A DNA stretch of 64,000 nucleotides from Neoechinorhynchus agilis (Eukaryota; Animalia; Acanthocephala): positions 7,256,044 through 7,320,043 of the forward strand of contig CM121343.1 in assembly GCA_051530055.1 (NCBI GenBank), given 5' to 3'. Every line of letters starts with the position of its first letter. The stretch's first letter is position 1. Positions 20,901 to 61,874 of this stretch are shown here, one piece after another. The notes beneath the pieces were generated by a model, which worked only from the letters and a program-made list of their open reading frames with translations, was not told the origin of the DNA and made no database searches. Both the position numbers and the translations under genes were made by a program.

Positions 20901-22870
20901 TAAGGAACCGACGTTAATCTCCTTTTTTGTCTTACAATAGTCGTCTTCTCGAGACTTTGATCAAATTGATCACCGATCGTTGCCTTGCTCTCCAATCAAT
21001 GATTTCTATTCCCTTTTTTTCTTCTTTTTTATTAAGGAACCGACGTTAATCTCCTTTTTTGTCTTACAATAGTCGTCTTCTCGAGACTTTGATCAAATTG
21101 ATCACCGATCGTTGCCTTGCTCTCCAATCAATGATTTCTATTCCCTTTTTTTCTTCTTTTTTATTAAGGAACCGACGTTAATCTCCTTTTTTGTCTTACA
21201 ATAGTCGTCTTCTCGAGACTGATCAAATTGATCACCGATCGTTGCCTTGCTCTCCAATCAATGATTTCTATTCCCTTTTTTTCTTCTTTTTTATTAAGGA
21301 ACCGACGTTAATCTCCTTTTTTGTCTTACAATAGTCGTCTTCTCGAGACTTTGATCAAATTGATCACCGATCGTTGCCTTGCTCTCCAATCAATGATTTC
21401 TATTCCCTTTTTTTCTTCTTTTTTATTAAGGAACCGACGTTAATCTCCTTTTTTGTCTTACAATAGTCGTCTTCTCGAGACTGATCAAATTGATCACCGA
21501 TCGTTGCCTTGCTCTCCAATCAATGATTTCTATTCCCTTTTTTTCTTCTTTTTTTATTAAGGAACCGACGTTAATCTCCTTTTTTGTCTTACAATAGTCG
21601 TCTTCTCGAGACTTTGATCAAATTGATCACCGATCGTTGCCTTGCTCTCCAATCAATGATTTCTATTCCCTTTTTTTCTTCTTTTTTTATTAAGGAACCG
21701 ACGTTAATCTCCTTTTTTGTCTTACAATAGTCGTGTTCTCGAAATTTTGTTCAAATTGATCACCGATCGTTGCCTTGCTCTCCAATCAATATTCTTTCCA
21801 ACAAAACCCCCCCCACATTTCTATTCCCCTTTTTATAAGGAACCACGTTATTTTTTTTGTCTTACAAAGTCTTCTCGAATTTGCAAATTGATCACGATCG
21901 TTCTCTCCAATCAATGATTTCTATTCCCTTTTTTCTTCTTTTTTTATTAAGGAACCGACGTTAATCTCCTTTTTTGTCTTACAATAGTCGTCTTCTCGAG
22001 ACTTTGATCAAATTGATCACCGATCGTTGCCTTGCTCTCCAATCAATGATTTCTATTCCCTTTTTTTCTTCTTTTTTTATTAAGGAACCGACGTTAATCT
22101 CCTTTTTTGTCTTACAATAGTCGTGTTCTCGAAATTTTGTTCAAATTGATCACCGATCGTTGCCTTGCTCTCCAATCAATGATTTCTATTCCCTTTTTTT
22201 CTTCTTTTTTATTAAGGAACCGACGTTAATCTCCTTTTTTGTCTTACAATAGTCGTGTTCTCGAAATTTTGTTCAAATTGATCACCGATCGTTGCCTTGC
22301 TCTCCAATCAATGATTTCTATTCCCTTTTTTTCTTCTTTTTTTATTAAGGAACCGACGTTAATCTCCTTTTTTGTCTTACAATAGTCGTCTTCTCGAGAC
22401 TTTGTTCAAATTGATCACCGATCGTTGCCTTGCTCTCCAATCAATGATTTCTATTCCCTATTTTTCTTCTTTTTTTAAGGAACCGACGTTAATCTCCTTT
22501 TTTGTCTTACAAGAGTCGTCTTCTCGAGACTTTGATCAAATTGATCACCGTTCGTTGCCTTGCTCTCCAATCAATGATTTCTATTCCCTATTTTTCTTCT
22601 TTTTTTTAAGGAACCGACGTTAATCTCCTTTTTTGTCTTACAATAGTCGTGTTCTCGAAATTTTGTTCAAATTGATCACCGATCGTTGTTCCGCTCTCTT
22701 GTGATCTTTCACTAGAATCTTTTAACCTATCTCGCAATCAATAGTTTCTATTCTCTCTTCTGTTTTTTCTATTAAGGAAACTACGTTGATTTCCTTTTTT
22801 GTCTTATACGAGTCGTCTTCTCGAGACTTTGATCAAATTGATCACCGATCGTTGCTTTGCTCTCCTGCGA
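17935..22870. repeat. 132-bp satellite, about 37 copies
   Basis: Unit ggaaccgacgttaatctcc...ttgatcaaattgatcaccgatcg...cttttttattaa counted as 132 nt (18081 to 18213). Copies are highly homogeneous, with diverged copies at the ends. Confidence 0.97.
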
Positions 22871-27632: not shown

Positions 27633-28791
27633 TTATTTGAGGAAGGGGATCATTTTGAGGACCTCACTACGGAATAGTTTTCCACTAGTGCAGTAAAGAT
27701 GGAAGTTTAGTGAGAAAGATCCAAAGTACCACAATCTGAGCATATCTAGGAACCAGTTATACGTCCAAGGTTTCAGTGGTTTTCCGCTTAGTTTCATGAT
27801 TAACATAGTGAACAACATTGCGTTATAGGGAGCATTTAAAAGTAGAAATGCGCTCGATCTTAGCAATAACATATAAGTAATTCTAGGTTGCCGATACCTA
27901 ACGACTTTCTTAGCAGCAATAAGAACACCTTGTTTTGTTGATTCCATATGAACATAAGACTTTTTCATTCGTCTAAGATCCTTTGACTTGGATCCTTTCA
28001 AAATCTTACATATTGAGGCGTTCATAAATGTTATTAGTCCACAAGGTAGCACAAATGTGAATAGACTATCGATTACGAGTAAAACTGCAAGTGCTACATG
28101 GTGATCGTTTCTGTGTACGGCAGTTTTTATTGATATTATCCAATCTTTTGTTGTTTCAACTCCTTCAACGCATCTTCCATTTTCGACGTGAGTAAACCAA
28201 AAAGCAAACGAATAGAACACAAGTCCAAACATGGTGCAGGCCATTATAATGTGAAAGTCAAATCGATTGCTGGCCCACCATCGTTTAACGGCATAAGTTA
28301 ACGGGAAGTTGGATACAATGAAAAGTCGGGTTGTAAAAATCGTGGTGTAAATTTCCTTGGCTTAAAAAAAGGTTGATTTAAAAACCCAGGAACTATGCTG
28401 CTGATAGGAAACTACTAACGTGAGTTATATACACGGAAACGGAACATACGACAGGTTTAATGATCCATTTTGATGTTTGCCGGTGAGCATCGTACCACGC
28501 CATTGATAGAGTCAATAAAAATACGAGATCACTACAGCATAGAGATATAATAAAGAGTCTTAGCCGGACATGGCGCATTGATTTCCTGCTCATTATCATC
28601 ACTGTCAGTAGGTTTCCAATACATCCAACCACGATTACGATCAAGACGTAGTAGTAACTGATCGGTGCGCTGATGTAATTAAATTGAAGGTGGCTTTTTC
28701 CATTGCTCCATGGTCTTTTCGTTACTGGATTATGGATCGCATTGAGGTCAACAGCATTTGAGGAGGAGGAGGAGAAGATTAATGCCAACAT
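27633..28791 (-). CDS. Rhodopsin-family peptide GPCR (FMRFamide/TRH-receptor-like group), two exons
   Basis: TM1 GCIGNLLT, TM2 ISLCCSDLVFL, TM3 CSVSVYITHVSSFLS, TM5 DSLFTFVLPCGLITFMN, TM6 AFLLLNAPY, TM7 SFSLNFHLYCTSGKLFR. A ~43-nt intron near 28353-28395 is required. Confidence 0.85.
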
Positions 28792-31864: not shown

Positions 31865-33268
31865 GATCGTATTGTCTATCCTTCATGATAACACTCGGGT
31901 GAAAAGTAATCCTCTTACACCCCGAGAATCAGTTTTATTTCGTAATATTTCGTGGGCCAAACCTTTTCAAACATTGTCATCTGAAAAAAACCGAAACATA
32001 GATTGCATTAGCCTATTTCCGATTGCTCTGCATGGCTCGGGCTCGCAGGGTTGCCATTCCCGTGGACCGGGGCGCTTCATGATAACATTCGGGTGACAAG
32101 TAATCCTCTTGTGGCGATTCACACCCCGAGAATCAGTTTTATTTTGTAATATTTCGTGGGCCAAACCTTTTCAAACATTTTCATCTGAAAAAAACCGAAA
32201 CATAGATTGCATTAGCCTATTTCCGATTGCTCTGCATGGCTCGAGCTCGCAGGGTTGCCATTCCCGTGGACCGGGGCGCTTCATGATAACATTCGGGTGA
32301 CAAGTAATCCTCTTGTGGCGATTCACACCCCGAGAATCAGTTTTATTTTGTAATATTTCGTGGGCCAAACCTTTTCAAACATTTTCATCTGAAAAAAACC
32401 GAAACATAGATTGCATTAGCCTATTTCCGATTGCTCTGCATGGCTCGAGCTCGCAGGGTTGCCGTTCCCGTGGACCGGGGCGCTTCATGTTAACATTCGG
32501 GTGACAAGTAATCCTCTTGTGGCGATTCACACCCTTCGTGGGCCAAACCTTTTCAAACATTGTCATCTGAAAACCCGAAACATAGATTGCATTAGCCTAT
32601 TTCCGATTGCTCTGCATGGCTCGGGCTCGCAGGGTTGCCATTCCCGTGGACCGGGGCGCTTCATGATAACATTCGGGTGACAAGTAATCCTCTTGTGGCG
32701 ATTCACACCCCGAGAATCAGTTTTATTTTGTAATATTTCGTGGGCAAACCTTTTCAAACATTTTCATCTGAAAAAAACCGAAACATAGATTGCATTAGCC
32801 TATTTCCGATTGCTCTGCATGGCTCGAGCTCGCAGGGTTGCCGTTCCCGTGGACCGGGGCGCTTCATGATAACATTCGGGTGACAAGTAATCCTCTTGTG
32901 GCGATTCACACCCTTCGTGGGCCAAACCTTTTCAAACATTGTCATCTGAAAACCCGAAACATAGATTGCATTAGCCTATTTCCGATTGCTCTGCATGGCT
33001 CGGGCTCGCAGGGTTGCCATTCCCGTGGACCGGGGCGCTTCATGATAACATTCGGGTGACAAGTAATCCTCTTGTGGCGATTCACACCTCGAGAATCAGT
33101 TTTATTTTGTAATATTTCGTGGGCCAAACCTTTTCAAACATTGCCATCTGAAAAACCGAAACATAGATTGCATTAGCCTATTTCCGATTGCTCTGTATGG
33201 CTCGGGATCGCGGGGTTGCCATTCCCGTGCCTCGGAGTGTGAATCACCACAAGAGGATCGTATTATCT
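31865..33268. repeat. Tandem array of 204-bp and about 175-bp units (about 6.7 copies), ending in an inverted 27-bp segment
   Basis: cttcatgataac/cttcatgttaac recurs at spacings of about 196, 204, 204, 175, 204 and 177. Positions 33231-33257 are the reverse complement of the internal tcctcttgtggcgattcacaccccgag (25/27). Confidence 0.93.
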
Positions 33269-33719: not shown

Positions 33720-34380
33720 CATGATTATTTATTAAAGACGTTTCGAACCTCGTCGGGTTCATTATCATCAGTTCTAAAATAAAAGTGGTTAAGTAATTAT
33801 TCCGCTCTCATACGCTCTTAGGGTTGATTTTGTTGTTTCATTTCGGTTAGCTATGAAGACAGAGTTTGTAACTTCGTCGGTCATTCATATCCGGTTTCTA
33901 TTCGTTGATTAAGAAGGCTTCGTTAATTAAGCATCGAAATTTATAACGTTCAATTACTAAAAATATTGTTTGGCCATAATTGATCACTGGCCACTTTGCA
34001 TCTCGTGTGGTTCAATATTCGATGCTACCACCTTCTGGGTCTTGGACCGTTTATATTCTGCTAATCTCGTCTCCCGATTCTGGCCTGTTTGTTGCTGTTG
34101 CATTGGCTACGAGAAACTTCGTAGACAACAGCTCTCTTTTCCACCTCCTGGTATTTCCGGGGGAAATGAGGTTTGATATCAGCACAGAAGGTTGAAAATA
34201 AGATTCGCATTTTACCGACAGACCGCTGTTCTTCACAATCCTTGAAATTTTGTAGCGCCAACGGTTGGTTTGTGGACCTATGTCCGGCACTCCAATGCGC
34301 AGGTCCATTCTATTCGGGCCCGTGAATGTCCCTTTTGACTGAGTGTTCCTCGCACGTAAAATTGCTCTCGCGCTGAGGTC
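33720..34380 (-). mobile_element. Degenerate Penelope-like 3' fragment (RT thumb/linker plus GIY-YIG) with a terminal hammerhead-like motif
   Basis: Frameshifted segments GVPDIGPQTNRWRYKISRIVKNSGLSVK, AVVYEVSRSQC, GQNRETRLAEYKRS...SNIEPH and ILVIERYKFRCLINEAFLI follow the order of Penelope linker and GIY-YIG motifs. Confidence 0.72.
33728..33778 (-). ncRNA. Hammerhead-ribozyme-like motif (GUC triplet) with a 4-nt insertion after A9
   Basis: Minus strand: agaa-CTGATGA-taat-GAACC-cgacga-GGTTC-GAAA-CGTC-tttaataaa. Confidence 0.62.
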
Positions 34381-35200
34381 GTCAAGTTTCCTCATTTTTA
34401 ACTCATTGAACAATGTTTGAACTCGGTTGATCTGAACATTGAACGGTGAATAATTCATATGCCATTAAAGATATGGCCAAATCAAGAACATATTTGGAAT
34501 CAAAGCATCGAGATGGACTCTATGAACGTAAACTGCAGGTCGTCAGGTTTCTTCAATTTTAACTAATTAAACAATGTTTGAACTCGGTTCATCTGAACAT
34601 TGAACGGTGAATAATTAATAAGCCATGAAAGTTACGGCCAAATCAAGAACATAATTGGAATCAGAGCGTCGAGATGAACTCTGTGAACGTAACCTGGAGG
34701 TCGTCAGGTTCGTTCATTTTTAACTCATTGAACAATGTTTGAACTCGGTTCATCTGAACATTGAACGGTGAATAATTCATAAGCTATGAAAGTTACGGCC
34801 AAATCAAGAACATATTTGGAATCAGAGCTTCAAGATGGACTCTATGAACGTAAACTGGAGGTCGTCAGGTTTCTTCATTTTTAACTCATTGAACAATGTT
34901 TGAACTCGGTTCATCTGAACAATGAACGATGAATAATTCATATGCCATTAAAGATATGGCCAAATCAAGAACATATTTGGAATCAAAGCATCGAGATGGA
35001 CTCTATGAACGTAAACTGGAGGTCGTCAGGTTTCTGCAATTTTAACTCATTGAACAATGTTTGAACTCGTTTCGTCTGAACAATGAACGATGAATAATTC
35101 ATAAGCCATGAAAGTTACGGCCAAATCGAAAACATATTTGGAATCAGAGCGTCGAGATGGACTCTATGAACGTAACCTGGAGGTCGTCAGGTTTCTTCAT
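34375..35200. repeat. 160-bp tandem array, about 5 copies, abutting the Penelope fragment
   Basis: ggtcgtcaggtttc...ttttaactcattgaacaatgtttgaactcgg recurs every 160-161 bp. Confidence 0.93.
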
Positions 35201-35315
35201 TAATGGTTGATTGAACAATTTTGTAGGATTCTTTCGGGTCGCAGCGGGAATTCAAACTATTGTAGAAGGGCATTTAATATTATAGTTGCGAAACGGCATT
35301 TTATTACTGCTGACG

Positions 35316-35908
35316 ATGTTGTTTATTAACGTTATATTTGTTTGTTTACTATATTTGGCTGAATGCGGTAATCGCGATCCACGACACTGCGAAGGTAATT
35401 GCCTCTCCCCTTGGGTCCGATGCTCTCCCTATGTTTGATTTGTTTGTGCGTGTGTTTAGTTTGCATAAAAGTACTGGAGAAATACATTGATTTCGCCAAT
35501 TCGAAGGGTTTGAATCCCTACAAGGAATCCGGATTTGAATCATTGTTTAAGGATTTGTGTAGGACATTGTCTGATAAAGAAGAACGGTTTTGTTATTACA
35601 TGGGAGGATTGGATACCTCAGCAACCTCGTTATTGAAGCACATATCGAGGCCGATGAGTTTTCAGAAACCGATAAAATCAATATGCCAACAGGATGTTTC
35701 TAAAGTTGATCAAAACGTATGTGAGTTGAGATACGAAGTGGAAATCGATTTGACAAAAATCGACCTGGATCGACTTCCTTTACGCGAATTAAGACAAATT
35801 CTCGAAAAATGGCACGAGGAATGTATTGGTTGTACAGAGAAGTCCGACTTTGTCAACCGTATCAAAGAACTCTTACCGTCGAAACTTAAACAAAAGCAGG
35901 AATTGTGA
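35316..35908 (+). CDS. MANF: MANF/CDNF (ARMET-family) ER stress protein, two exons
   Basis: Exon 1 (35316-35394) gives the signal peptide MLFINVIFVCLLYLAECG...HCE. A GT-AG intron spans 35395-35459. Exon 2 gives VCIK...LC...EERFCYYMGG...SAT...PMSF.KP..SIC...D.NVCELRY...LRELRQILEKWHEECIGCTEKSDFVNRIKEL...KQEL. It has eight Cys, a CxxC motif and a KDEL-like tail. Confidence 0.95.
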
Positions 35909-36632: not shown

Positions 36633-37292
36633 GGTATGGACGCCGCTTTTGTTGCGAATCTCAAAAGATTGTCATTTTTAGTGATATTTACGACAAACTA
36701 GATCTCTAGTGTAAAATGAAGATTCATTCCTGATGTATTAAAGCTCAAAAACGGTTTATATAATGAATATTAGAACCGGTGAGTCGGTATAGATCAGGAT
36801 TGAACATTGTAATTGGAACCGTTTTCAATAAGAAACCTTGAAATACATTCTGGTATGGACGCCGCTTTTGTTGCGAATCTCAAAAGATTGTCATTTTTAG
36901 TGATATTTACGACAAACTAGATCTCTAGTGTAAAATGAAGATTCATTCCTGATGTATTAAAGCTCAAAAACGGTTTATATAATGAATATTAGAACCGGTG
37001 AGTCGGTATAGATCAGGATTGAACATTGTAATTGAAACCGTTTTCAATAAGAAACCTTGAAATACATTCTGGTATGGACGCCGCTTTTGTTGCGAATCTC
37101 AAAAGATTGTCATTTTTTTAGTGATATTTACGACAAACTAGATCTCTAGTGTAAAATGAAGATTCATTCCTGATGTATTAAAGCTCAAAAACGGTTTATA
37201 TAATGAATATTAGAACCGGTGAGTCGGTATAGATCAGGATTGAACATTGTAATTGAAACCGTTTTCAATAAGAAACCTTGAAATACATTCTG
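36633..37292. repeat. Triple tandem duplication of about 219 bp
   Basis: ggtatggacgccgcttttg at 36633, 36852 and 37071, in near-identical copies. Confidence 0.95.
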
Positions 37293-44726: not shown

Positions 44727-45874
44727 TTAAAGATCAGTGTTGCTCTTTTCGATTGGTTTATGAAAGTGGTTTAAGCATCTTCTCAAAAATTTGATAGCAT
44801 CTTTTCTAAATCCACCAACAAAAATCACATAAATGTAAAAATGCATGGCATGTGACGAATAGTAAAGGTACAAGAGATAGTCATCTTCAACAGTTTTGAG
44901 TTTCTTTGGAACATCCGGCAACAATACTGAACGGAATAGTAAACGGACTGCCTTTACTAAGTGATAGGGTGCGTTGATAAGTGGATAGAAGATAGTAGTT
45001 ATCAAAATGAGAGTTGTTATATTGCATGCAGCGAGTCCGATATTCTTATTGGACACATTTTCGGTTACATCGTTCGCATCAAGTGGTAAACGCTTTGCTC
45101 TTAGACTTCTTAATATTAGCATATTGAAAATGTACAATGCGATATAAGGAACGACAAATACAACAACGGTATCGCAAATGGCCGTCACTTCTAGGGCTTT
45201 GTGGAAATATATCCGGGCACCACAGTTACCTCGAATCGAGACTCCGTTGATTTTAACGATTGGTGAATGAACGGCGAATAGAAAGACTACATAAGCGATT
45301 AATCCAGTAGTACAAATAGTAAGATTGGCTCCTTTTACAATCGCATGAGCATATCTGTAAGTCCGGATCGGAAAACGAATTGCGAAATATCTGTGAATGG
45401 TGAAGGCGACTACCACATAAGTGGTTACAAAGTCGCTGACATAACTTATATAAACCAGTGATTTTCATTGATGCCACTTCAAGGAAGATCATTGGGGTAG
45501 ACCGAGACGGGACATACGACCGGTGAGTTCAGAACTGTAATTCCTTCTCTGGTAAGCACCAACAAGAAGAGTACAATCAAATACGTTGTATCGCTGATGG
45601 CTAATAGCACCAAGTACATTGAAGATGGAGTCTTGCTGAACTCTTTACCTTTAGCAAGGATGATAACGAGAACGTTTCCAGGTAAACCGAGAGCGAGTAA
45701 TAAGATCAAATACGCTTGTCGGAGTATGTGACCGGTGTTGGTCACTTGCTGGATTGCAGCCCCAACTGGGCTTTCCATGTACAAAGTCGTGGTCGAGTTG
45801 GCCACTGTGGTCTCGGCGATTGTTGTTGTTGTTGTTGTTGTCAATACACTCGTAATTGAAACAAACGAGTGCAC
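44727..45874 (-). CDS. Rhodopsin-family peptide GPCR (same broad group as 27633-28791); requires removal of a 47-nt segment in TM3
   Basis: LALGLPGNVLVI, MYLVLLAISDTTYL, CPVS|VYISYVSDFVTTYVVVAFTIHRYFAIRFP, CDTVVVFVVPYIALYIFN, INAPYHLV, HAMHFYIYV..VGGFR. Confidence 0.83.
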
Positions 45875-47591: not shown

Positions 47592-50500
47592 TCCGTTTTG
47601 AGTAGATTTGTTTTAAAAACCATTTGAGAAACGATCGGACCCGAATGCGGGGGCTCGAATGAAAAACAAATTCCATGAGTAACCGGATTAGGGATTGTGA
47701 CTAAGAATACGAACGAGTGATGCGTTGCCTTAATAATCAGAGATAAATGTTCTATTATCGTTCAATTGTGGGTTTTTTAAGATTTTCAGAATCGTAAAGT
47801 ATGAAATACACGTCGAAGAAATAAAATATATTTCCTTTTTATTGATTTTCCCTTGTTAATGGCACTTTGGTTCATGGGTGAAAGGTCCGTTTTGAGTAGA
47901 TTCGTTTTAAAAACCATTTGAGAAACGATCGGACCCGAATGCTGGGGCTCGAATGAAAAACAAATTCCATGAGTAACCGGATTCGGGATTGCGACTAAGA
48001 ATACGAACGAGTGATGCGTTGCCTTAATAATCAGAGATAAATGTTCTATTATCGTTCAATTGTGGGTTTTTTAAGATTTTCAGAATCGTAAAGTATGAAA
48101 TACACGTCGAAGAAATAAAATATATTTCCTTTTTATTGATTTTCCCTTGTTAATGGCACTTTGGTTCATGGGTGAAAGGTCCGTTTTGAGTAGATTCGTT
48201 TTGAAAACCATTTGAGAAACGATCGGACACGAATGCTGGGGCTCGAATGAAAAACAAATTCCATGAGTAACCGGATTAGGGATTGCGACTAAGAATACGA
48301 ACGAGTGATGCGTTGCCTTAATAATCAGAGATAAATGTTCTATTATCGTTCAATTGTGGGTTTTTTAAGATTTTCAGAATCGTAAAGTATGAAATACACG
48401 TCGAAGAAATAAAATATATTTCCTTTTTATTGATTTTCCCTTGTTAATGGCACTTTGGTTCATTGGTGAAAGGTCCGTTTTGAGTAGATTCGTTTTGAAA
48501 ACCATTTGAGAAACGATCGGACACGAATGCTGGGGCTCGAATGAAAAACAAATACCAGGAGTAACCGGATTCGGGATTGCGACTAAGAATACGAACGAGG
48601 ATGCGTTGCCTTAATAATCAGAGATAAATGTTCTATTATCGTTCAATTGTGGGTTTTTTAAGATTTTCAGAATCGTAAAGTATGAAATACACGTCGAAGA
48701 AATAAAATATATTTCCTTTTTATTGATTTTCCCTTGTTAATGGCACTTTGGTTCATGGGTGAAAGGTCCGTTTTGAGTAGATTCGTTTTGAAAACCATTT
48801 GAGAAACGATCGGACACGAATGCTGGGGCTCGAATGAAAAACAAATTCCATGAGTAACCGGATTCGGGATTGTGACTAAGAATACGAACGAGTGATGCGT
48901 TGCCTTAATAATCAGAGATAAATGTTCTATTATCGTTCAATTGTGGGTTTTTTAAGATTTTCAGAATCGTAAAGTATGAAATACACGTCGAAGAAATAAA
49001 ATATATTTCCTTTTTATTGATTTTCCCTTGTTAATGGCACTTTGGTTCATGGGTGAAAGGTCCGTTTTGAGTAGATTCGTTTTAAAAACCATTTGAGAAA
49101 CGATCGGACCCGAATGCTGGGGCTCGAATGAAAAACAAATTCCATGAGTAACCGGATTAGGGATTGTGACTAAGAATACGAACGAGTGATGCGTTGCCTT
49201 AATAATCAGAGATAAATGTTCTATTATCGTTCAATTGTGGGTTTTTTAAGATTTTCAGAATCGTAAAGTATGAAATACACGTCGAAGAAATAAAATATAT
49301 TTCCTTTTTATTGATTTTCCCTTGTTAATGGCACTTTGGTTCATGGGTGAAAGGTCCGTTTTGAGTAGATTCGTTTTGAAAACCATTTGAGAAACGATCG
49401 GACACGAATGCTGGGGCTCGAATGAAAAACAAATTCCATGAGTAACCGGATTCGGGATTGTGACTAAGAATACGAACGAGTGATGCGTTGCCTTAATAAT
49501 CAGAGATAAATGTTCTATTATCGTTCAATTGTGGGTTTTTTAAGATTTTCAGAATCGTAAAGTATGAAATACACGTCGAAGAAATAAAATATATTTTTTA
49601 TTGATTTTCCCTTGTTAATGGCACTTTGGTTCATGGGTGAAAGGTCCGTTTTGAGTAGATTCGTTTTGAAACCATTTGAGAAACGATCGGACACGAATGC
49701 TGGGGCTCGAATGAAAAACAAATTCCATGAGTAACCGGATTCGGGATTGCGACTAAGAATACGAACGAGTGATGCGTTGCCTTAATAATCAGAGATAAAT
49801 GTTCTATTATCGTTCAATTGTGGGTTTTTTAAGATTTTCAGAATCGTAAAGTATGAAATACACGTCGAAGAAATAAAATATATTTCCTTTTTATTGATTT
49901 TCCCTTGTTAATGGCACTTTGGTTCATGGGTGAAAGGTCCGTTTTGAGTAGATTCGTTTTAAAAACCATTTGAGAAACGATCGGACACGAATGCTGGGGC
50001 TCGAATGAAAAACAAATTCCATGAGTAACCGGATTCGGGATTGCGACTAAGAATACGAACGAGTGATGCGTTGCCTTAATAATCAGAGATAAATGTTCTA
50101 TTATCGTTCAATTGTGGGTTTTTTAAGATTTTCAGAATCGTAAAGTATGAAATACACGTCGAAGAAATAAAATATATTTCCTTTTTATTGATTTTCCCTT
50201 GTTAATGGCACTTTGGTTCATGGGTGAAAGGTCCGTTTTGAGTAGATTCGTTTTGAAAACCATTTGAGAAACGATCGACACGAATGCTGGGGCTCGAATG
50301 AAAACAAATTCCATGAGTAACCGGATTCGGGATTGCGACTAAGAATACGAACGAGTGATGCGTTGCCTTAATAATCAGAGATAAATGTTCTATTATCGTT
50401 CAATTGTGGGTTTTTTAAGATTTTCAGAATCGTAAAGTATGAAATACACGTCGAAGAAATAAAATATATTTCCTTTTTATTGATTTTCCCTTGTTAATGG

Positions 50501-50804
50501 CACTTTGGTTCATGGGTGAAAGGTCCGTTTTGAGTAGATTCGTTTTAAAAACCATTTGAGAAACGATCGGACACGAATGCTGGGGCTCGAATGAAAAACA
50601 AATTCCATGAGTAACCGGATTCGGGATTGCGACTAAGAATACGAACGAGTGATGCGTTGCCTTAATAATCAGAGATAAATGTTCTATTATCGTTCAATTG
50701 TGGGTTTTTTAAGATTTTCAGAATCGTAAAGTATGAAATACACGTCGAAGAAATAAAATATATTTCCTTTTTATTGATTTTCCCTTGTTAATGGCACTTT
50801 GGTT
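47592..50804. repeat. 294-bp tandem array, about 11 copies
   Basis: ttttgagtagattcgtttt recurs at 47890, 48184 and onward with a 294-bp period. Copies are near-identical. Confidence 0.97.
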
Positions 50805-50912: not shown

Positions 50913-51932
50913 CTAGCTTTCAGCACTGTCGAGTTTATCGTTGGAGCAAATCTCGTTAACGAAGGATTTGTTTGCTGTTTCCGAAGATAAACTCTTGCTA
51001 AATATCACGGATCTAATTTTAATATTATCATTCGTAACATTCTGGGAGCGAAAATTAGGAATTTCTTCATCAGTGATATCACTTCTTGAAATAGTTTCGT
51101 TGTATTTTCTAAGCTTTGACCGCCTATTTTGAAACCAAACCTACATTATCCAGTTAAAAGCGAATAAAAAATGAAGGCATAATACCTGAATAGTTTTCTC
51201 TGGCAATGTCAGAATGTCAGCGAGTCGTAAGCGTAAGGCCCGGTCCGGTCTTGGGCAAACTCTGAAGGTTTCAATCAATAAATTAGTTTGATTATTAGCG
51301 ATTTTCGTTCTATTAAATTTCTTTTTAGTACTGTCGTCTTTTGAGCTATCATTTATAATTGCCAATAATTCATTTTTATCTATTATTGGTTTATCAGAAG
51401 AAAGCATTTTGTGGACGGGTGTAATGGTATCTGCAACTTGTTTAAATTCACCATCTCCTTTCTTTGATCGTTCATCTAAAGATTGAACATTTGGTTGTTG
51501 TTGTTGGCAACTCATTTTACAATCCATGAAGTCTTTTTCGCAAAGAATCACTCTCTTGTAGTGTTTGGTCCAAGCGGTAATCACATAGATGGGATCGGTT
51601 GCAGTTACAGCACAATGACAGAATGTACATGTTAAACATGAGATATGAAAATACTCAAACCCATTTGATCCATTATCTCCTCTCCGAATAAGATCCTCAG
51701 GTTGTAAAAATTTCATACATATTCCACAATGTGGGCCGAAATTCTCGAAGTAGTGAGTCTTGCAATAATACTTTTTATCAGTGCCGATGTAGCAAGCGGG
51801 TCCTATTAATACGAGACACCGGGAACATCGAAAACATGTCAGATGGAAGTTTTGAAAGTCAATCGAATAGACACGTTCGTTTGAATTGATCAATTTATTG
51901 CATGATTTACAGGTGAAGACAGTCCTTTGCAT
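50913..51932 (-). CDS. Divergent LIM-homeobox transcription factor (two LIM domains plus homeodomain), two exons
   Basis: LIM1 CKSC...FHLTCFRCSRC...YCKTHY and LIM2 CGIC...FHISCLTCTFC...LCEKDF. The homeodomain reads KKFNRTKI...PRPD...LPEKTIQ|VWFQNRRSK across a GT-AG intron at 51141-51185. Stop at 50913. Confidence 0.92.
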
Positions 51933-52904
51933 TTAGTACTTTAATACCGAATCAACCCGCTCAGCCAAATTATTAAAATGCTCGAAACGGACCATAGCGA
52001 ACATTTTTAATACCATTTAAAAACATGGTTCGTTGCACGTCAACACTTATCGCTTTTGCAGCCTCGATAACCATCAAACTATATCTGAAATCTTGACTCC
52101 GGGCAAATCCTATTGAAGTTCGAAAAGTTTTTTCCTTATACAACTTCGATTTATTCTCAAATAAGCATTATGATGCCACGATTTCTCAGCGCCGATCTGG
52201 AAGCTTTTAAGTTGGCCTATGAGATCGAAATAAAACATTTTAAGGATTACAATGAAATCGAGTCACTACTTCTAAAGCGCAAAAGTGGATGCACCTAATT
52301 GCTATTTGCACCCACCAGTGCCACATATCCTTCTGGATTTGATTTTTACGTTCTTTTCAAAATTCTATACTCTTCCAGGAATCTCGAAGAGCAAAAATAA
52401 ACCTCGTTCGGAAATGATTGAATAATCAGAAGATGACACCAATTTTTATTACTGATTAACAACAGAAGCAAGCTTTTTTGGCCCAGAATGGATAAGTAAT
52501 AAAACTTAATGTCTTAGCGAAACTTTCTGCCATGATTACTGTCGACTTGAGAACATTTTTCACAATGCAAAAAATGTGAAGAATACGCTCAAAATGATGA
52601 TGAACTCACGTTTGTTTCCAAAGGGTTTTCATTGTGGCATTGATTTTTTATGAAGATAGAGTAATCGTTATTTGAGCCGTAAACAATATTCGTTTGAAAC
52701 TATGGACTGCGAATTCGGTGAGATCGGGAGAAGTTCATTCGGGTGAGATTATTTTGCAGGAAAAGTCCGTTTTGAGCTGAATTTTGGGTTTTGGTGCACA
52801 TAAATTGCAAGTCTAAAAGCTGTTTGCTAAATAAGGGGATTCTCTATTCGTCTCATAGTCGCGGTGTCTTTTAAACAAATTTTCCAAAATGAGAATTTTA
52901 TTCA

Positions 52905-55900
52905 TCATAGAAGACGGTACCTCTGACCAAGGGGAGCCATTTCAAAGTTTGAGTTGTAATCAACGGAAGTGATGCATTTAACAAGGTTGTTAATTGCAAA
53001 GACTTCGGCATCATCTCCATTGAATCGTACGTCTATTTTATTTTCGGCGTCGCAGACTGTCACTTTAGGCGTACAATTATTGAGGTTCATACTGTGCCGG
53101 TTCGTTTTGAGTCTCTTGGCACTGATACGAGCGGCGTGTTTTCTGAGGCCATACAGATTTAAACAACCGACTTCAATGGCTGCCTTGGATACGAGTGCCA
53201 ATGATCCAGTTGGTCCACATAATCCATCAGCCGACAGAGTGAGTGAAAGATTAAAAGGGCACTTTCCTATTCCACTTGTATCAGTAGAAGCGCTTACCTG
53301 TCCGCCTTTTAAAACATATTTAGGAGATACCATGAATTGCGACGGTTCCCAGATAACCAAATCGGCCAATCGAGATTTCTGGAGAGATCCAACTAGGTGA
53401 TCGCAACCCAAAGCAGTTGCTACGTTCTTTGTGAACTTTGATAAATATCTTATAACTCTGAAGTTATCGCCTCGTTTTGTAGTTTCTTCTTTCAATCTAC
53501 CTCTAATCGATTTCATCCGATGAGCGATCTGCCACAACGATCTAATATTGTCAAATGGCGCCGTTTGATACACTGATTGTCCCAAGTACGATAAAGAGTT
53601 CTCACTTTCGTATTGGCTCTATTAATGAGTAGATAATCAAGGTTGTTCGTTTCAAAACCCCTCCCCGATCTTACGCAATTCGTTCCACATGAAATCATAC
53701 TGATTGCACCGATATCGTGTAGAATATGCTCCAATGTGCATTGATGGTCGGGTACTGTGAGAGACTTACCAAAACGGCTAAACATTATTTTTGAACGAAA
53801 ATCGTCTATTTCACTCTAAAGTACTCACCATGAAGAAGTTAAAATCACAGAAGGCTGTTTGGCAATCTCTTTAAACGGTACCGTTGTAGCTTAGTACGTG
53901 TTCAGAAGTTCAAAACTATTAGCAACCAAAGAACCCTTCAATAAACGCATGGGCGTCTTAAAATCTCATGTTTCATCAATGAGAAGAATAATGTGAGTTA
54001 TAATGACGAAATCCAGGAATTCCGAACTTTTCATTACCAAGCACGAAAAGGGTCTCTACTTTTGCCGTCCTACAATAACTAGGGAACATTCAACTATTTA
54101 AAATTACTGAAAATACTTAAAATGTAACTAATGTTATCGAAGATCTTAGGGGTGAAAAAAAGTACTATTCCCGAACAAAACTTCAGCATCCAAATTGAAA
54201 ATGCTTTGTGATATCACAATCGATACTTATTGACTCATTTAAAGCTCATAAAAGTCACAAGGATGCATCCACCGATGGATATTTCCACAAATATAAACGC
54301 AAAAACGGACGTAATCGAACCTTAGACTTTATAAAACGACCACAAGAGTTCCGTGTAAGTAAACCTTTAAGATAAATTAAAAATTCACCATCCGTGCAGT
54401 GTTCGTCTATGTCTACAATCGTACCAATTATTAAATCCGCCAACATGTGTTCTAAAGCAATCGATTGGCATAATTATTGGTCGATCCTTCAGGATATCCA
54501 TTAATTCTTCGTTTGCAGTATAGGACTCATTCCATGGGTCCGTACAGCAGATCAGTGGAACATCATGATACTCTGCACACCTAAGAGCAGAATCAACTGC
54601 TGCTCTTGACGAACCGAAATGTTCATTGACGACCAAAGCCGCAGCTCCGGCAACCAGGCAATCCTCAACTTCTTTGGCTAAACCTTCAGATTTTGAAGCC
54701 CCGCTTCTTACAATACATCCGACATTGAGTGGATAATTATCGGTTGATTGAAGTACACTCTTTACTGCCCCAGGTCCAGAGAGGCAAATGTTACCACCAC
54801 CTCCCCCTCCAAGAACAAAAAGTGTCGTAATGCCACACTTGGCACACTGTTCACAAACATTTCCACCGGGTCCCACGTTTGCAATGACTACAGAACCAGC
54901 AGTAGCCAAAAGACCTTCACCGCTAATAATGTTAGTGCCTAGACCAATGATAAGTCCATCCGTGACGTGTTCCATAGTATGTGGATTACCGGCATTGCCA
55001 ATATTAACAATCAATCCTTCTCTTATGCCGATATCCGCTTTGATTACCCCGAGAACTGCGTCAATGATAACTACGTTTGTGATGACAGTATCGAGTGCTC
55101 GATCATTTCGAGCATTAGCCATTTGCCCCATACCCTCGCGTATAACTTTACCGATTCCATGAACTGCTTCATCGCCATGAACGGTCAGATCGTGTTCAAC
55201 CTCAACAAAAAGGTTAGTATCTCCTAATTTTATGAGATCACCAGTGGTCGGTCCATATTGCTGCACGTAGATGGAACGCGGCATGACGGCGCCGGGTGGC
55301 CGCTCCTGAGATTCATTAGAGAGTTTATGAGAGAATCCGCGTTTCCTCATATTCTTGATGCTTTTCTTCAAAGCTTCATCCGTAAGTGGACCATCACAAA
55401 CCCAATTGCCACCACGGACGATCCTTTCACCTCCGATGGCAACTAAACATACCTGCACGGATTCCCCTTGATCATTAGCTTCATTGAAAGCCTTTCCCTA
55501 AATGAAACTAACAACATGCAGGAAATTCAAAAGACGTTCCAGCAGGTATACTAAGTCGCATTCCATAGGCAACGGACCGATCAAATTGAAGAGCCTTATT
55601 GACTTCTATGAAATGAAAATGACTACCAACGATAATTTTAGAATCCGAAGAGTTTACAACTGTTACAGTGCGGGTTTCCAATTTATTTGGATTTAGATCG
55701 ATATCACTATTGTCGTGAATCTCAATGTTACCGGGTGGATCAGTCTTTTCGTCTCCGACACTTCCAAATAAATCCAAATCCGGCTCAGGTAAAAAGCTCC
55801 CCATTAGCGCCATCGCCAAGTCTCCATTGAGCGAACAAATTGGATTGGTGATCACTATCTAAATATGCCGGAAAACAAAAAAGGTGATCGATAAAAGCAA

Positions 55901-56231
55901 CAACTAACCGGACGCGTTCCACATTGAAAATCGGCAACAAAACTCAATTCTCGGATCATACTAGGAACTCCGGTCATAACTTGCCGGTATCCTAGAAGCC
56001 GACGTACACTGTCTGCCAACATGGCATCGTCTTCGATTCCTTCACGAATGTACTCCAAGCACTATTTTTTAAGGATGAATCAATGAAATTCTAAGATTTA
56101 CCCACCTGACTGGTCAAAAGAGCCACTGCCTCTTTATAATTCAATCTAACACCTCGAGCCAATCGACGTTGAGCCAAAAAACCCGCATTGTGTAATGTCA
56201 GATTTCCCATCTCATTTTGACTAAGGAACAT
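52905..56231 (-). CDS. Single-chain (gamma-beta-alpha) urease homologue with degenerate catalytic residues, intron-containing
   Basis: [38 protein letters not shown] (gamma), [34 protein letters not shown] (beta), [32 protein letters not shown]...[44 protein letters not shown] (alpha), ending PLGQRYRLL*. Introns 56062-56105 and 55859-55908 are canonical. The junction between about 54400 and 53900 is not fully resolved. Confidence 0.92.
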
Positions 56232-56891: not shown

Positions 56892-58328
56892 TTATCGTAA
56901 TTGCTCATCTGATCGTTCTTCGAGGACAGTCAAAGTACAGTCTGACTCGGACGTATTCGTTTCCCCACCAGTTGTCTCCGACGGAGCTTCGATGGAAGTT
57001 TTATGGATGACTGGACATTGGATCGAGTTTTCAAGCTCACTATCAGCCGTATATCTAAGCTTTGATCTTCTTAGATACTCCATCATGAGCAAATCAACAT
57101 CCTCGTCGTTCATTGTCCTTTTGGAGTTCAATTTTTCACTTTGGTCTGCTTTCTCGGACGTATTATTACCGACGTCATTTTTGGATTCCTCCGGTTCTTC
57201 TAAATCGACAGATTGGTTATTATCGATGATTGCTTTGTCAGCAACGTTCAAATGGTCATCGGTGTAACAAGTGTCCATATCGCCTGAACCCAAAAAGAAG
57301 ACCATATCTTTGAAGACCCAATTCCCATACTGATCGGTTGGACATTGTTCCAAACCAAGAATAATCCGATGTCCACCAGCAATCAATAAACTATTGACCC
57401 AATGACCCGTTGTGGTGATCATATCAGCATGAACATCACTTAAGAATTCAGGTTTGACTTCAACTTCCTTAAATCCATCATTGCTCCTTGATGAACCGGA
57501 TAAGAATATCCCACTAGCAATCAATTGGAAAACACGTCGAAATGCCTTGGCTAAAGTAAGAGGGAATTTATTCCTTTTCTGACTTGTAGAAGCACAGTAA
57601 AGCGCTAATTTGTCGGTTAGCCAACTACTAAGGTATTTCAGTCCTTCAAACCTCCTGAATATATCCTTCAAAACACAAATGAGCATCCGGCTGTATTGAT
57701 TGATCAGAGAATCAGAATGTTCACAACAGGAGGCTCTTGTGATTATAAGACTTTCCATTTGGGATATAAAGCGATCATCTTTCCCAATTCCCAAGACATA
57801 ACAGATAGCTTGGTAAAGACCATCACGGTAATCAAGGCGAACGTAGCAACCACCGGACGAATCCACCCTCAATTCGTCACCGAATGAATCCGCCGCTACC
57901 AAGCCTCTGATAGATTGTGAAACTTCATCGACCAAATCACATTCACGTTCTCGATCATCAACCACTAAAACAAAATCAATCACACTATCTCCTTTGATCA
58001 TTGTTTCAAGTCGATTAGAACCAATAAGGAAGTGATCAAGTAAACAAATTGAATCTTCCTTTGACAACGATACCATTTGATCGAATATTCGTTTGAGACG
58101 ACGAGCAAACTTCGCCAGCTTAGAACGCTCTTTCTCAGTCGCTCTTATGAGTTTATACCGCTCGGTAATTGCATCAGTCAATTCCCGATCCATTGTTAAC
58201 ATCGAACTGGGCTGCGAGAATGATCCATCCGCTACCAGGTCAAACGTCAACCATGTTGATGGAACCACGCTAAACTGGATTTCCTCTTGAAGACTGGCTA
58301 CTTCTCGACCAGGACAACCCGTCCACAT
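56892..58328 (-). CDS. ILF2: ILF2/NF45-like DZF-domain protein with an acidic C-terminal extension
   Basis: TFDLVADGSF...LTDAITERYKLIRATEKE...LIGSNRLETMIKGDSVIDFVLV...LICVLKDIFRRFEGLKYLSSWLTDKLALY...AFRRVFQLIASGIFLSGS parallels the NF45 motifs (PFDF, VGSYKKGTM..G..VADLVV, LKDLR.RF.G...L.PW..DLL..Y, R..Q.LA.G.FLPGS). Confidence 0.72.
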   Translation of the reverse strand: MWTGCPGREVASLQEEIQFSVVPSTWLTFDLVADGSFSQPSSMLTMDRELTDAITERYKLIRATEKERSKLAKFARRLKRIFDQMVSLSKEDSICLLDHFLIGSNRLETMIKGDSVIDFVLVVDDRERECDLVDEVSQSIRGLVAADSFGDELRVDSSGGCYVRLDYRDGLYQAICYVLGIGKDDRFISQMESLIITRASCCEHSDSLINQYSRMLICVLKDIFRRFEGLKYLSSWLTDKLALYCASTSQKRNKFPLTLAKAFRRVFQLIASGIFLSGSSRSNDGFKEVEVKPEFLSDVHADMITTTGHWVNSLLIAGGHRIILGLEQCPTDQYGNWVFKDMVFFLGSGDMDTCYTDDHLNVADKAIIDNNQSVDLEEPEESKNDVGNNTSEKADQSEKLNSKRTMNDEDVDLLMMEYLRRSKLRYTADSELENSIQCPVIHKTSIEAPSETTGGETNTSESDCTLTVLEERSDEQLR

Positions 58329-58959: not shown

Positions 58960-61874
58960 AACCAACCCTAACTGATAACCCCTGCTGAATAATCCTCCAT
59001 AACGACCTCCCCCTGCTGTATAAACAAACCCGAACGGATAATCCACTTCTGGATAAAATTTACCCCCTAAAACGCAACCGCCATTTGGGAATCTAACCCG
59101 CATCTGCCGTTATCCCGTCTTTTGCAACCTATCACAATCATAAATCCGTCGGCTTGAAGCGTTTCATAAAAGAGCCTCTAAAATTTGCACATTTGATTCT
59201 CCCCCTCGCGCTACCACCACAATTTTTATCACATTTTATTCCACTTTTAACATGAGCACAACACTCGATAATCCCCTGCTTTATAAACCAACCCTAACGG
59301 ATAATCCACCGCTGTATAAACCAACCCGAACTTATAATCACCTGCTGAAAAACCAACCCTAACCGATATCCCCCACTGTATAAACCAACTCGAACGGATA
59401 ATCCCCTACTGGATAATTCCGCCAGAACGGACCTCCCCGTGCTGTATAAACCAACCCTAACGGATAATCCCCCGCTGTATAAACCAACCCAAACAGATAA
59501 TCCCCTTCTGGATAATTCCATCCGAACGGACATACGTCCACTGTATAAACCACCCCAACTGATAATCCCTTACTGGATAATTCCACCCGGACGGACATCC
59601 CCCTGCTGTATAAACCAACCCGAACGGATAATCCCCTGCTGGATAAACCAACCCGAACGGATAATCCCCCGCTGTATAAACCAACCCTAACGGATAATCC
59701 CCTGCTGGATAATTCCGCCAGAACGGACTTCCCCCTGCTGTATAAACCAACCCGAACGGATAATCCCCCGCTGTATAAACCAACCCGAACAGATAATCCC
59801 CTACTGGATAATTCCCCGAACGGACTCCCCCTGTATAAACCAACTCGAACGGATAATCCCCTACTGGATAATTCCGCCAGAACGGACTTCCCCGTGCTGT
59901 ATAAACCAACCCTAACGGATAATCCCCCGCTGTATAAACCAACCCAACCCAACAGATAATCCCCTTCTGGATAATTCCATCCGAACGGACATACGTCCAC
60001 TGTATAAACCACCCCAACTGATAATCCCTTACTGGATAATTCCACCCGGACGGACATCCCCCTGCTGTATAAACCAACCCGAACGGATAATCCCCTGCTG
60101 TATAAACCAATCCGAACGGATAATCCCCTGCTGTATAAACCAACCCGAACGGATAATCCCCCTGATAACCCACACCTGCTGTATAAACCAACCCGAACGG
60201 ATAATCCCCCGCTGTATAAACCAACCCGAACAGATAATCCCCTCTGGATAATTCCACCCGAACGGACATCCTCCACTGTAAACCACCCCAACGATAATCC
60301 CTACTGGATAATTCCACCCGAACGGCATCTCCTGCTGTATAAACCAACCCGAACGGATAATCCCACTGGATAATTCCACCAGAACGGACATCCCTGCTGT
60401 ATAAACCAACCCTAACAGATAATCCCCTTCTGGATAATTCCACCCGAACGGACATACGCCCACTGTATAAACCAACCCAACGGATTCCCCCGCGATAAAC
60501 CAACCAACAATCCCCTCTGATAACACCCACACCCCTGCTGTATAAACCAACCCTAACGGATAATCCCCTACTGGATAATTCCGCCAGAACGGACATCCCC
60601 CTGCTGTATAAACCAACCCGAACGGATAATCCCCTTCTGGATAAATCCGCAAGAACGGACATCCGCCCACTGTATAAACCAACCCGAACGGATAATCCCC
60701 CGCTGTATAAACCAACCCGAACTTATAATCCCCTGCTGTATAAACCAACCCTAACGGATAATCCCCTGCTGTATAAACCAACCCGAACGGATAATCCCCT
60801 TCTGGATAATTCCATCCGAACGGACATACGTCCACTGTATAAACCACCCCAACTGATAATCCCTTACTGGATAATTCCACCCGGACGGACATCCCCCTGC
60901 TGTATAAACCAACCCGAACTTATAATCCCCTCTGATAAACCAACAACGGATAATCCCCTGCTGTATAAACCAACCCGAACGGATAATCCCCTGCTGTATA
61001 AACCAACTCGAACGGATAATCCCCTGCTGTATAAACCAACCCTAACGGATAATCCCCTGCTGTATAAACCAACCCAAACAGATAATCCCCTTCTGGATAA
61101 TTCCATCCGAACGGACATCCGTCCACTGTATAAACCACCCCAACGGATAATCCCTTACTGGATAATTCCACCCGAACGGCTAGTCTCCTGCTGTATAAAC
61201 CAACCCGAACGGATAATCCCCTACTGGATAATTCCGCCAGAACGGACCTCCCCGTGCTGTATAAACCAACCCTAACGGATAATCCCCTGCTGTATAAACA
61301 GACCCGAACGGATAATCCCCTCCTGGATAATTTCGCCCGAACGGACATCCGTCCACTGTATAAACCAACCCAACGGATAATCCCTTACTGGATAATTCCA
61401 CCCGAACGGCTAGTCTCCTGCTGTATAAACCAACCCGAACGGATAATCCCCTGCTGTATAAACCAACTCGAACGGATAATCCCCTGCTGTATAAACCAAC
61501 TCGAAGGGATAATCCCCTGCTGTATAAACCAACTCGAAGGGATAATCCCCTGCTGTATAAACAGACCCGAACGGATAATCCCATACTGGATAATTCCGTC
61601 AGAATGGATCTTAAACGCCTCCGCCATTTAGGAGTCCCTATGGCCGATCTTTCCAAATTTTATTACAGCTTTATTTTACCCTCCTTTACGTCTTTTGCAA
61701 CCTATCGCAATCACAAATCTGTCGTCTTGAAAGGTTTGATAGAGGAGCTTCTAAATTTCGTACAGTAAATTTCTTCCCCACTGAATACCTTTATAAGATT
61801 TTCATCAAACAATCAAAACGCCTCTCAAGCCTACCACCACAATATTCCACACGAGCACAACACTCGTAATCCCC
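58960..61874. repeat. Composite 32-33-bp minisatellite nested in a larger two-unit direct repeat
   Basis: Monomer A ctgctgtataaaccaacccgaacggataatccc and monomer B ctactggataattccrccngaacggacatccc are interspersed over 59277-61606. Spacers 59070-59276 and 61612-61874 are diverged copies of each other. Confidence 0.95.

Follow-up and report, generated by a model that had tools for sequence, protein, structure and literature searches.

A urease homologue of the acanthocephalan Neoechinorhynchus agilis occupies positions 56231-52905 on the minus strand of the stretch analysed here, a 64-kb piece of contig CM121343.1 (GenBank assembly GCA_051530055.1) that is called the window below and to which all positions refer. 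The gene encodes a single chain of 823 residues in gamma-beta-alpha order and is divided into seven exons, which together give a spliced coding sequence (CDS) of 2472 nt, that is, 823 codons and a TGA. The six introns measure 44, 50, 46, 578, 51 and 86 nt in order and all have GT..AG borders, while the chain contains no internal stop or frameshift. Pfam matches of the minus-strand open reading frame (ORF) pieces (56243-52905) comprise Urease_gamma (PF00547; 5e-13 and 9e-06), Urease_beta (PF00699; 1e-22), the N-terminal domain of Urease_alpha (PF00449; 1e-47) and the C-terminal end of Amidohydro_1 (PF01979). NCBIfam urease alpha models match the same pieces at 1.5e-69 and 4e-33, with urease profile positions of about 270-344 left without a match, and sequence matches in the PDB reach down to 6e-151. 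The best database match is the N. agilis entry ACOME3_010241 (98% identity, 560 residues). A first-pass annotation of the window had read three urease domains fused in the eukaryotic order, and the domain matches together with the 823-codon chain bear this out.

The gamma-like domain is encoded by the first two exons. Exon 1 (56106-56231, minus strand, as are all gene features described here) opens with the ATG at 56231 and supplies residues 1-42, the first half of the domain, together with the 5e-13 Urease_gamma match; tblastn matches of the Pomphorhynchus and Mytilus proteins to this exon stop at 56106/56103. Exon 2 (55909-56061) adds residues 43-93, the second half, with the 9e-06 match, and the phase 0 intron that follows residue 93 (intron 2) matches intron 1 of Adineta in both alignment column and phase. 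Exon 3 (55513-55858) encodes residues 94-208 plus 1 nt, covering the beta-like domain with the motif VGSHFHF and the Urease_beta match, and ends at a GTTAGT donor. Exon 4 (54445-55466) spans residues 209-549, running from the end of the beta domain through a basic linker helix and the alpha N-terminal domain (YGPTTGD...), the source of the 1e-47 Urease_alpha match, into the first half of the barrel. It is followed by intron 4 (53867-54444), the sole long intron at 578 nt, which begins with a weak GTTGGC donor. Exon 5 (53829-53866) is a 38-nt micro-exon with a GTGAGT donor; its homologous counterparts are 'LKHPSVILTAC' in Pomphorhynchus and 'NVLPSS' in canonical ureases. Exon 6 (53659-53777) carries a remnant of the flap region, 16 residues long against the canonical 47, and a Gly in place of D360. 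Exon 7 (52905-53572) completes the chain with residues 602-823 and the TGA at 52907-52905; it encodes the remaining half of the barrel together with the C-terminal domain (WQIAHRMK ... PLGQRYRLL) and gives the 4e-33 NCBIfam match. A putative polyadenylation-type hexamer, AATAAA, read from the sequence at 52897-52902 on the same strand, begins 3 nt past the stop codon.

In GenBank the locus is annotated as two adjacent minus-strand genes, 56231-54385 and 53785-52905. The first (ACOME3_010241, 560 residues) continues past the donor of exon 4 as far as a TGA at 54387-54385, and the ATG of the second (53785; 274 residues) sits in the acceptor region of intron 5. The GenBank acceptor of exon 4 also lies later than 55466, which drops eight conserved residues at the exon 3/4 junction; an exon start at 55466 is favoured over it by tblastn with the Pomphorhynchus and Mytilus proteins. 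For the exon 4/5 junction, enumeration of in-frame GT..AG pairs yields two candidates and a 4-residue variant of the first. The first option joins the donor at 54444 (GTTGGC) to an exon start at 53866 (or 53854) and reads '...CFRTH|' at the join, and the second joins a donor at 54416 to an exon start at 53889, likewise in frame and with 17 residues more. The first was provisionally adopted for the 823-residue chain because its spacing is within one residue of the Pomphorhynchus orthologue. Intron-position conservation was uninformative as a junction test, only intron 2 being common with Adineta and the Pomphorhynchus gene being intronless. With regard to a possible transposon insertion, no second copy of intron 4 occurs elsewhere in the 64-kb window. 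The description of open exons separated by canonical short introns thus stands for the exons and for the GT..AG borders, but not for intron 4, with its length, its weak donor and its alternative in-frame junction.

These features of intron 4 bear on whether the gene family is maintained while the N. agilis copy itself recently died or was split at exon 4/5, leaving a truncated 560-residue product with or without the 274-residue one, or nothing functional. The GenBank models divide the locus exactly there, no strong donor ends exon 4, whose frame runs into the TGA at 54387-54385, intron 4 is 7-13 times as long as each of the other five, and the N. agilis branch is the longest of its group and has lost the most invariant sites. 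Such a recent death or split is nevertheless unlikely, because 275 further open and homologous codons (exons 5-7) lie downstream of the junction, free of stops and frameshifts and with a urease-model match of 4e-33. Moreover, there are two in-frame GT..AG solutions, one of them with the Pomphorhynchus-like spacing; exon 5 lies between a good acceptor and its GTGAGT donor and encodes the conserved PSVILT; and the ATG with which GenBank opens its second gene falls inside a splice acceptor. By a rough estimate, an intact CDS of 2.5 kb would tolerate only about 1% neutral divergence. As for the features of a decaying pseudogene, the check for stops and frameshifts returned none in 823 codons, substitutions avoid invariant sites, and the weak donor of exon 4 is the sole candidate lesion.

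Nickel ligands, catalytic residues and flap

The catalytic residues were located in HMMER alignments to the PDB chains of Klebsiella aerogenes UreC, whose numbering is used throughout, and in MAFFT alignments. All six nickel ligands are replaced in the N. agilis protein. Specifically, exon 4 encodes H134A (codon 54882-54880), H136V (54876-54874), K217V (54633-54631) and H246C (54546-54544), exon 6 encodes D360G (53686-53684), and H272I is seen in the MAFFT alignments. Two further catalytic residues are changed as well, H219 to Asn (codon 54627-54625, exon 4) and D221 to His, and both of these, like every ligand replacement other than H272I, appear with HMMER and MAFFT alike. At the level of motifs, GGIDTHIH is replaced by GSVVIANV, GLKIHEDWG by ALVVNEHFG, HSDTLNE by CTDPWNE and SSDSQ by SCGTN. 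The first-pass annotation had reported altered motifs at H134/H136, K217/H219, H246 and D360, and each of these readings is confirmed by both kinds of alignment. In canonical ureases, the lysine K217 has to be carbamylated in the dinickel centre, and a helix-turn-helix flap closes the active site.

The sixth ligand had been considered ambiguous on the grounds that a sequence RTHVGG might keep H272. This suggestion does not hold: the conserved Arg of 'GRTIHTYH' pairs with that of 'DRPIIMPI' in the MAFFT alignments, an Ile aligns at H272, and the RTH sits further downstream, while the 'VGGFNNW...' stretch is probably intronic. Realignment to plant, fungal and invertebrate ureases restores no ligand, and H272 is lost there too.

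The spacing from LTSS to EHILHD in N. agilis is 16 residues, compared with 47 from LPSS to EDILHD in canonical ureases in the MAFFT alignments, in agreement with the shortening noticed at first sight. The deletion of about 30 residues takes out C319, H320 and R336 of the flap. No flap-like coding sequence is found in intron 4 or in any frame of the 64-kb window. The earlier caveat over RTHVGG and H272, together with the uncertain junction at 54400-53900, could be taken to mean that the gene encodes a working urease and that its losses are only artefacts of an incorrect exon chain or alignment. We consider this extremely improbable. The long uninterrupted exons 4 and 6 contain five of the six ligand substitutions, each anchored by flanking invariant motifs in the HMMER and MAFFT alignments; the same losses recur in the intronless Pomphorhynchus ORF; and the window lacks the flap in every frame.

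Tested against the defining features of urease, the N. agilis protein has the domain modules and lacks the nickel ligands, the flap, H219 and D221. As judged from these alignments, it is a urease homologue by descent and fold that falls outside 'urease' as an enzyme family, and it would be unable to build the dinickel centre or to split urea by the known mechanism.

Orthologues and selection across Syndermata

After the N. agilis entry itself, the closest database matches are a protein of Pomphorhynchus laevis (48% identity, 817 residues), followed by those of bdelloid rotifers (Adineta, Rotaria) and Brachionus, and the canonical ureases of chelicerates, molluscs, plants and fungi rank below them. 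Orthologues with the same losses are present in all four syndermatan clades, namely Acanthocephala, Seisonidea, Bdelloidea and Monogononta. Across 11 catalytic positions, all are lost in 9/9 syndermatan sequences and all are kept in 7/7 canonical eukaryotic ureases (mollusc, chelicerate, mite, plant, alga and fungal), a count that leaves out a Cys at C319 in Seison and an Arg at R336 in Pomphorhynchus as chance MAFFT placements in the rearranged flap remnant. For the six nickel ligands alone, none is kept in any of the nine. The flap segment is reduced to 10-20 residues in eight of the nine sequences, and Seison has an unrelated 58-residue insert instead. The Seison nebaliae orthologue was found with a syndermatan profile in a search of 1.84 billion representative proteins, which also returned several monogonont-like metagenomic fragments.

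The orthologues differ in gene structure. That of Pomphorhynchus laevis is one uninterrupted, intronless ORF of 2454 nt and 817 codons (WNNJ02000054.1; stretch L002, 10001-12454). Introns number 0 in Pomphorhynchus, 6 in N. agilis and 14 in Adineta, and the intronless gene points to wholesale intron loss or replacement by a retrocopy. The bdelloid orthologues, from the two families represented by Adineta and Rotaria, all have 819 residues and are at least 90% identical, and the neighbouring genes are conserved between two Adineta species.

In a neighbour-joining (NJ) tree the syndermatan proteins form one clade with a long stem, placed next to protostome ureases, and the distance from N. agilis to the rotifers exceeds that from Pomphorhynchus to the rotifers by only about 10%. 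The N. agilis gene is an animal urease inherited by vertical descent; its domains follow the fused eukaryotic order, and it has one intron position in common with bdelloid rotifers. Where ligands have been replaced, the new residues vary among syndermatan classes (A/G/M/C/G at H134, V/I/S/R at K217, G/N/Y/S at D360). On the simplest reading, the nickel centre would have been lost once, in the syndermatan stem lineage.

Degenerate urease-like proteins also occur elsewhere. A protein of Radiomyces spectabilis (Mucoromycota) lacks most of the barrel core, and in bacterial 'urease subunit alpha' proteins, from Rubrivivax/Comamonadaceae and from an IMG metagenome, K217, H272 and D360 are replaced and the flap carries a deletion of comparable length. 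Dead ureases may have several independent origins.

Selection was measured by the Nei-Gojobori method on the reconstructed 15-exon CDS of Adineta vaga and A. ricciae. The pair gives a dS of 0.72, a dN of 0.055 and an omega (dN/dS) of 0.076, well below 1, and the lowest regional value, 0.041, belongs to the ex-catalytic barrel. The syndermatan orthologues are under strong purifying selection. The corresponding ratio between N. agilis and Pomphorhynchus (dN 0.48) is unusable, as synonymous differences of 0.78 amount to saturation. At the protein level, of the 154 positions at which the other 16 aligned ureases all agree, N. agilis retains 138, its losses being mostly conservative, and Pomphorhynchus retains 138/147 by the same measure. 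A full-length, 2693-nt transcript in the transcriptome of the acanthocephalan Dentitruncus truttae (CLUSTER-12666.19503) has the Pomphorhynchus protein as its best match (PMC12274423, supplementary file 4).

The proposal that the gene encodes a maintained pseudoenzyme and is not a decaying pseudogene is supported by conservation in four clades, intact ORFs, the omega of 0.076 and the D. truttae transcript. We put at roughly 0.78 the probability that the N. agilis gene is the orthologue of an ancient pseudo-urease common to Syndermata and not a decaying pseudogene, and its product is very probably a maintained, non-ureolytic pseudoenzyme. Several observations weigh against this interpretation. 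The exon 4/5 join requires a weak donor and a 578-nt intron, and it is there that GenBank splits the gene and makes the 3' third separate. Invariant positions are lost at 10% in N. agilis compared with 6% in Pomphorhynchus, and N. agilis is the most divergent member, with a branch on which some relaxation may have occurred. The dN/dS ratio is measurable in bdelloids only, and searches of the genome-paper supplements found no expression or proteome evidence for N. agilis or P. laevis. Finally, the barrel is the most constrained region within bdelloids (omega 0.04), a poor fit with an unimportant pocket, and this would accord with binding of a ligand or with a new catalytic role.

Predicted fold and surroundings of the gene

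The structure was predicted with AlphaFold2 for the Pomphorhynchus orthologue, standing in for the N. agilis protein. The model has a predicted local distance difference test score (pLDDT) of 82.9 and a predicted template modelling score (pTM) of 0.87, with weak stretches confined to loops, among them the flap remnant and the D360 loop. In the PDB it is most similar to the ureases of jack bean and pigeon pea, on which it superposes with template modelling (TM) scores of 0.87-0.88. The overall urease fold is thus predicted to be retained, as far as a model of the orthologue can tell.

Conservation is distributed unevenly over this fold. The gamma and beta domains, and especially the alpha N-terminal domain, are as conserved between syndermatan classes as they are in real ureases; for the alpha N-terminal domain, identity is 62-68% between syndermatan classes and 64-75% between real ureases. 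The barrel, by comparison, shows 39-49% identity between syndermatan classes and 77-83% between real ureases, and evolves about twice as fast in Syndermata as in canonical ureases. No new conserved catalytic set emerges, as only 10 scattered positions are invariant in six aligned Syndermata yet absent from canonical ureases. The helix linking the beta and alpha domains has become basic, with a charge of +3 to +5 in the six aligned syndermatan sequences versus -2 to +2 in canonical ones, and displays the pattern LKKxxKNxxK. A nuclear-localisation signal in this linker was considered; the linker is basic in eight syndermatan sequences, including the D. truttae fragment, and by eye not in Seison, and such a signal is not claimed.

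The barrel of acanthocephalans is also enriched in cysteine. The N. agilis protein contains 27 Cys, 15 of them in the barrel, and the Pomphorhynchus protein 18, of which 11 are in the barrel, compared with 11-15 in the rotifer orthologues (barrel 4-5) and 10-18 in canonical ureases (barrel 5-9). Some of the acanthocephalan cysteines stand at or near former ligand positions, in the segments CCTD, SCGTNC and IDCF (N. agilis residues 396-700; 54445-55466 and 53659-53777). Acanthocephalans accumulate metals, and the Cys enrichment may have been drawn into metal handling in the dead barrel.

A rebuilt barrel site, for example one based on Cys and His, would make the protein a neo-functionalised amidohydrolase that is still an enzyme or a binder of small molecules or metal. 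This would accord with the several cysteines at or beside the former ligands, with the barrel being the most constrained region in the Adineta pair (omega 0.041) and with its 92% identity between Adineta and Rotaria. We regard it as quite improbable, more so than a recent death of the N. agilis copy: the substitutes for the ligands vary from one syndermatan class to another, none of the 10 Syndermata-specific invariant positions forms part of an obvious catalytic set, the flap that gates the pocket is gone, and the Cys enrichment is confined to acanthocephalans.

The remainder of the window contains no second urease copy. A scan covering the ten largest ORFs elsewhere in it (nine of at least 150 residues) gave no match to an accessory family (UreD, UreF or UreG), and the metal-binding-protein tables of D. 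truttae hold no UreD/F/G entries, a weak negative (PMC12274423). The neighbours are ordinary animal genes at 56892-58328 (-), 51141-51932 (-), 35399-35908 (+), 27633-28244 (-) and 44727-45416 (-); a gene for a DZF-domain protein lies immediately upstream of the urease-like gene and a LIM-homeobox gene lies downstream of it, and an ARMET/MANF homologue and two rhodopsin-family receptor fragments complete the set. The 64-kb window is unusually rich in satellites. A tandem array at 18424-22688 has a 132-bp unit in about 32 copies with 95% match and a strong strand asymmetry (GC skew -0.32, AT skew -0.36). Another, at 47592-50804, with a rhodopsin-type receptor fragment on one side and the LIM-homeobox gene on the other, has a 294-bp unit in 11 copies with 98% match. 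At 59267-61593, about 70 units of a 33-bp (11-codon) sequence form a degenerate tandem repeat. Long ORFs on the minus strand overlap it, and their translations repeat GDYPFGLVYTA or GLSVRVGLYSR; they have no Pfam match and represent either a repeat protein or the open frames of a satellite. Further tandem arrays with units of 161-379 bp lie at 8764-10216, 31917-33229, 34375-35201 and 36633-37292.

Proposed role and significance

After loss of the nickel centre, we infer, the pseudo-urease was kept for a non-catalytic job. The gamma, beta and alpha N-terminal domains are the parts that build the urease oligomer, and to our knowledge all ureases are trimer-based. The syndermatan protein would accordingly be pictured as a cytosolic, urease-shaped, trimer-based homo-oligomer that would act through its surfaces, by binding a protein, a membrane or another ligand, and not via the old pocket. 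Such an oligomer is proposed because the domains that build it are conserved while the barrel is not, because the beta-alpha linker helix has turned basic, and because no new conserved catalytic constellation has appeared at the old site. This specific mode of binding or scaffolding is a tentative suggestion, somewhat more doubtful than not, and stands well below the maintenance of the protein as such.

The closest comparison is with the canonical single-chain eukaryotic urease (EC 3.5.1.5; jack bean, PDB 3LA4, 4H9M and 7KNS; Mytilus, Lottia, Tachypleus). It belongs to the same family, with the same ancestry and the same fused order, and is similar at 37-43% full-length identity and in the predicted fold (TM 0.87-0.88). 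The syndermatan protein differs from it in lacking the six nickel ligands, H219, D221, C319, H320, R336 and the flap, and in having the basic linker helix. Outside the ureases, the amidohydrolase superfamily includes pseudoenzymes such as the CRMP/DPYSL proteins and inactive dihydroorotase-like domains or subunits. These likewise keep an oligomer of TIM barrels after the loss of metal ligands and reuse it for protein binding or scaffolding. They belong, however, to another branch of the superfamily, and dihydropyrimidinase and dihydroorotase structures match the Pomphorhynchus model at a TMq of about 0.32 only.

Within the urease family, the closest precedent by analogy is Eu5/SBU-III of soybean, a third urease paralogue that, in an account citing Witte 2011, was suggested from bioinformatics to be non-ureolytic (PMC5452136). 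Eu5, which is compared here by description only, is proposed to have lost ureolysis through substitutions and deletions and is yet expressed and possibly functional. It is a young paralogue beside two active ureases in one plant, whereas the syndermatan protein is an old, clade-wide orthologue in which all ligands are gone and for which a non-exhaustive search showed no intact companion copy. Active ureases also have non-catalytic activities, described as insecticidal, antifungal, membrane-active and exocytosis-inducing (review PMC6077230; PMC5472951), which are a documented precedent for a protein of urease shape acting other than by ureolysis. In plant ureases part of this activity maps to the beta-alpha linker region. 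The same region has been made basic in Syndermata, although the moonlighting ureases, unlike the syndermatan protein, remain active enzymes. By analogy, the latter may have retained a moonlighting activity like those of plant and bacterial ureases.

Full-text literature searches for a urease pseudoenzyme or a rotifer urease found no description of the syndermatan protein. Databases label the syndermatan proteins 'Urease' (UniRef names), and a 2025 paper on acanthocephalan metal-binding proteins counted an orthologue as a nickel-binding urease, from which ammonia detoxification was inferred (PMC12274423). Inferences on nitrogen metabolism and nickel requirement in rotifers and acanthocephalans would need revision, because the residues at the canonical site argue against both nickel binding there and ureolysis. 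The pseudo-urease would also add an ancient, clade-wide case to the pseudoenzymes of the amidohydrolase superfamily.

A wider possibility, held with still less confidence than the oligomeric mode of action, is that ureases have an important non-catalytic function, one preserved over hundreds of millions of years both by free-living rotifers and by gutless parasites. If true, selection on that function would be as strong as on a housekeeping enzyme, and Syndermata would constitute a natural separation-of-function mutant of urease. Debate over the non-enzymatic activities of urease has gone on for decades, with active enzymes and inhibitors as its experimental material. A clade without catalysis, in which the protein is kept at an omega of about 0.08, would provide a clean system for finding the other function of urease, and two of its members, Brachionus and Adineta, are culturable laboratory animals.

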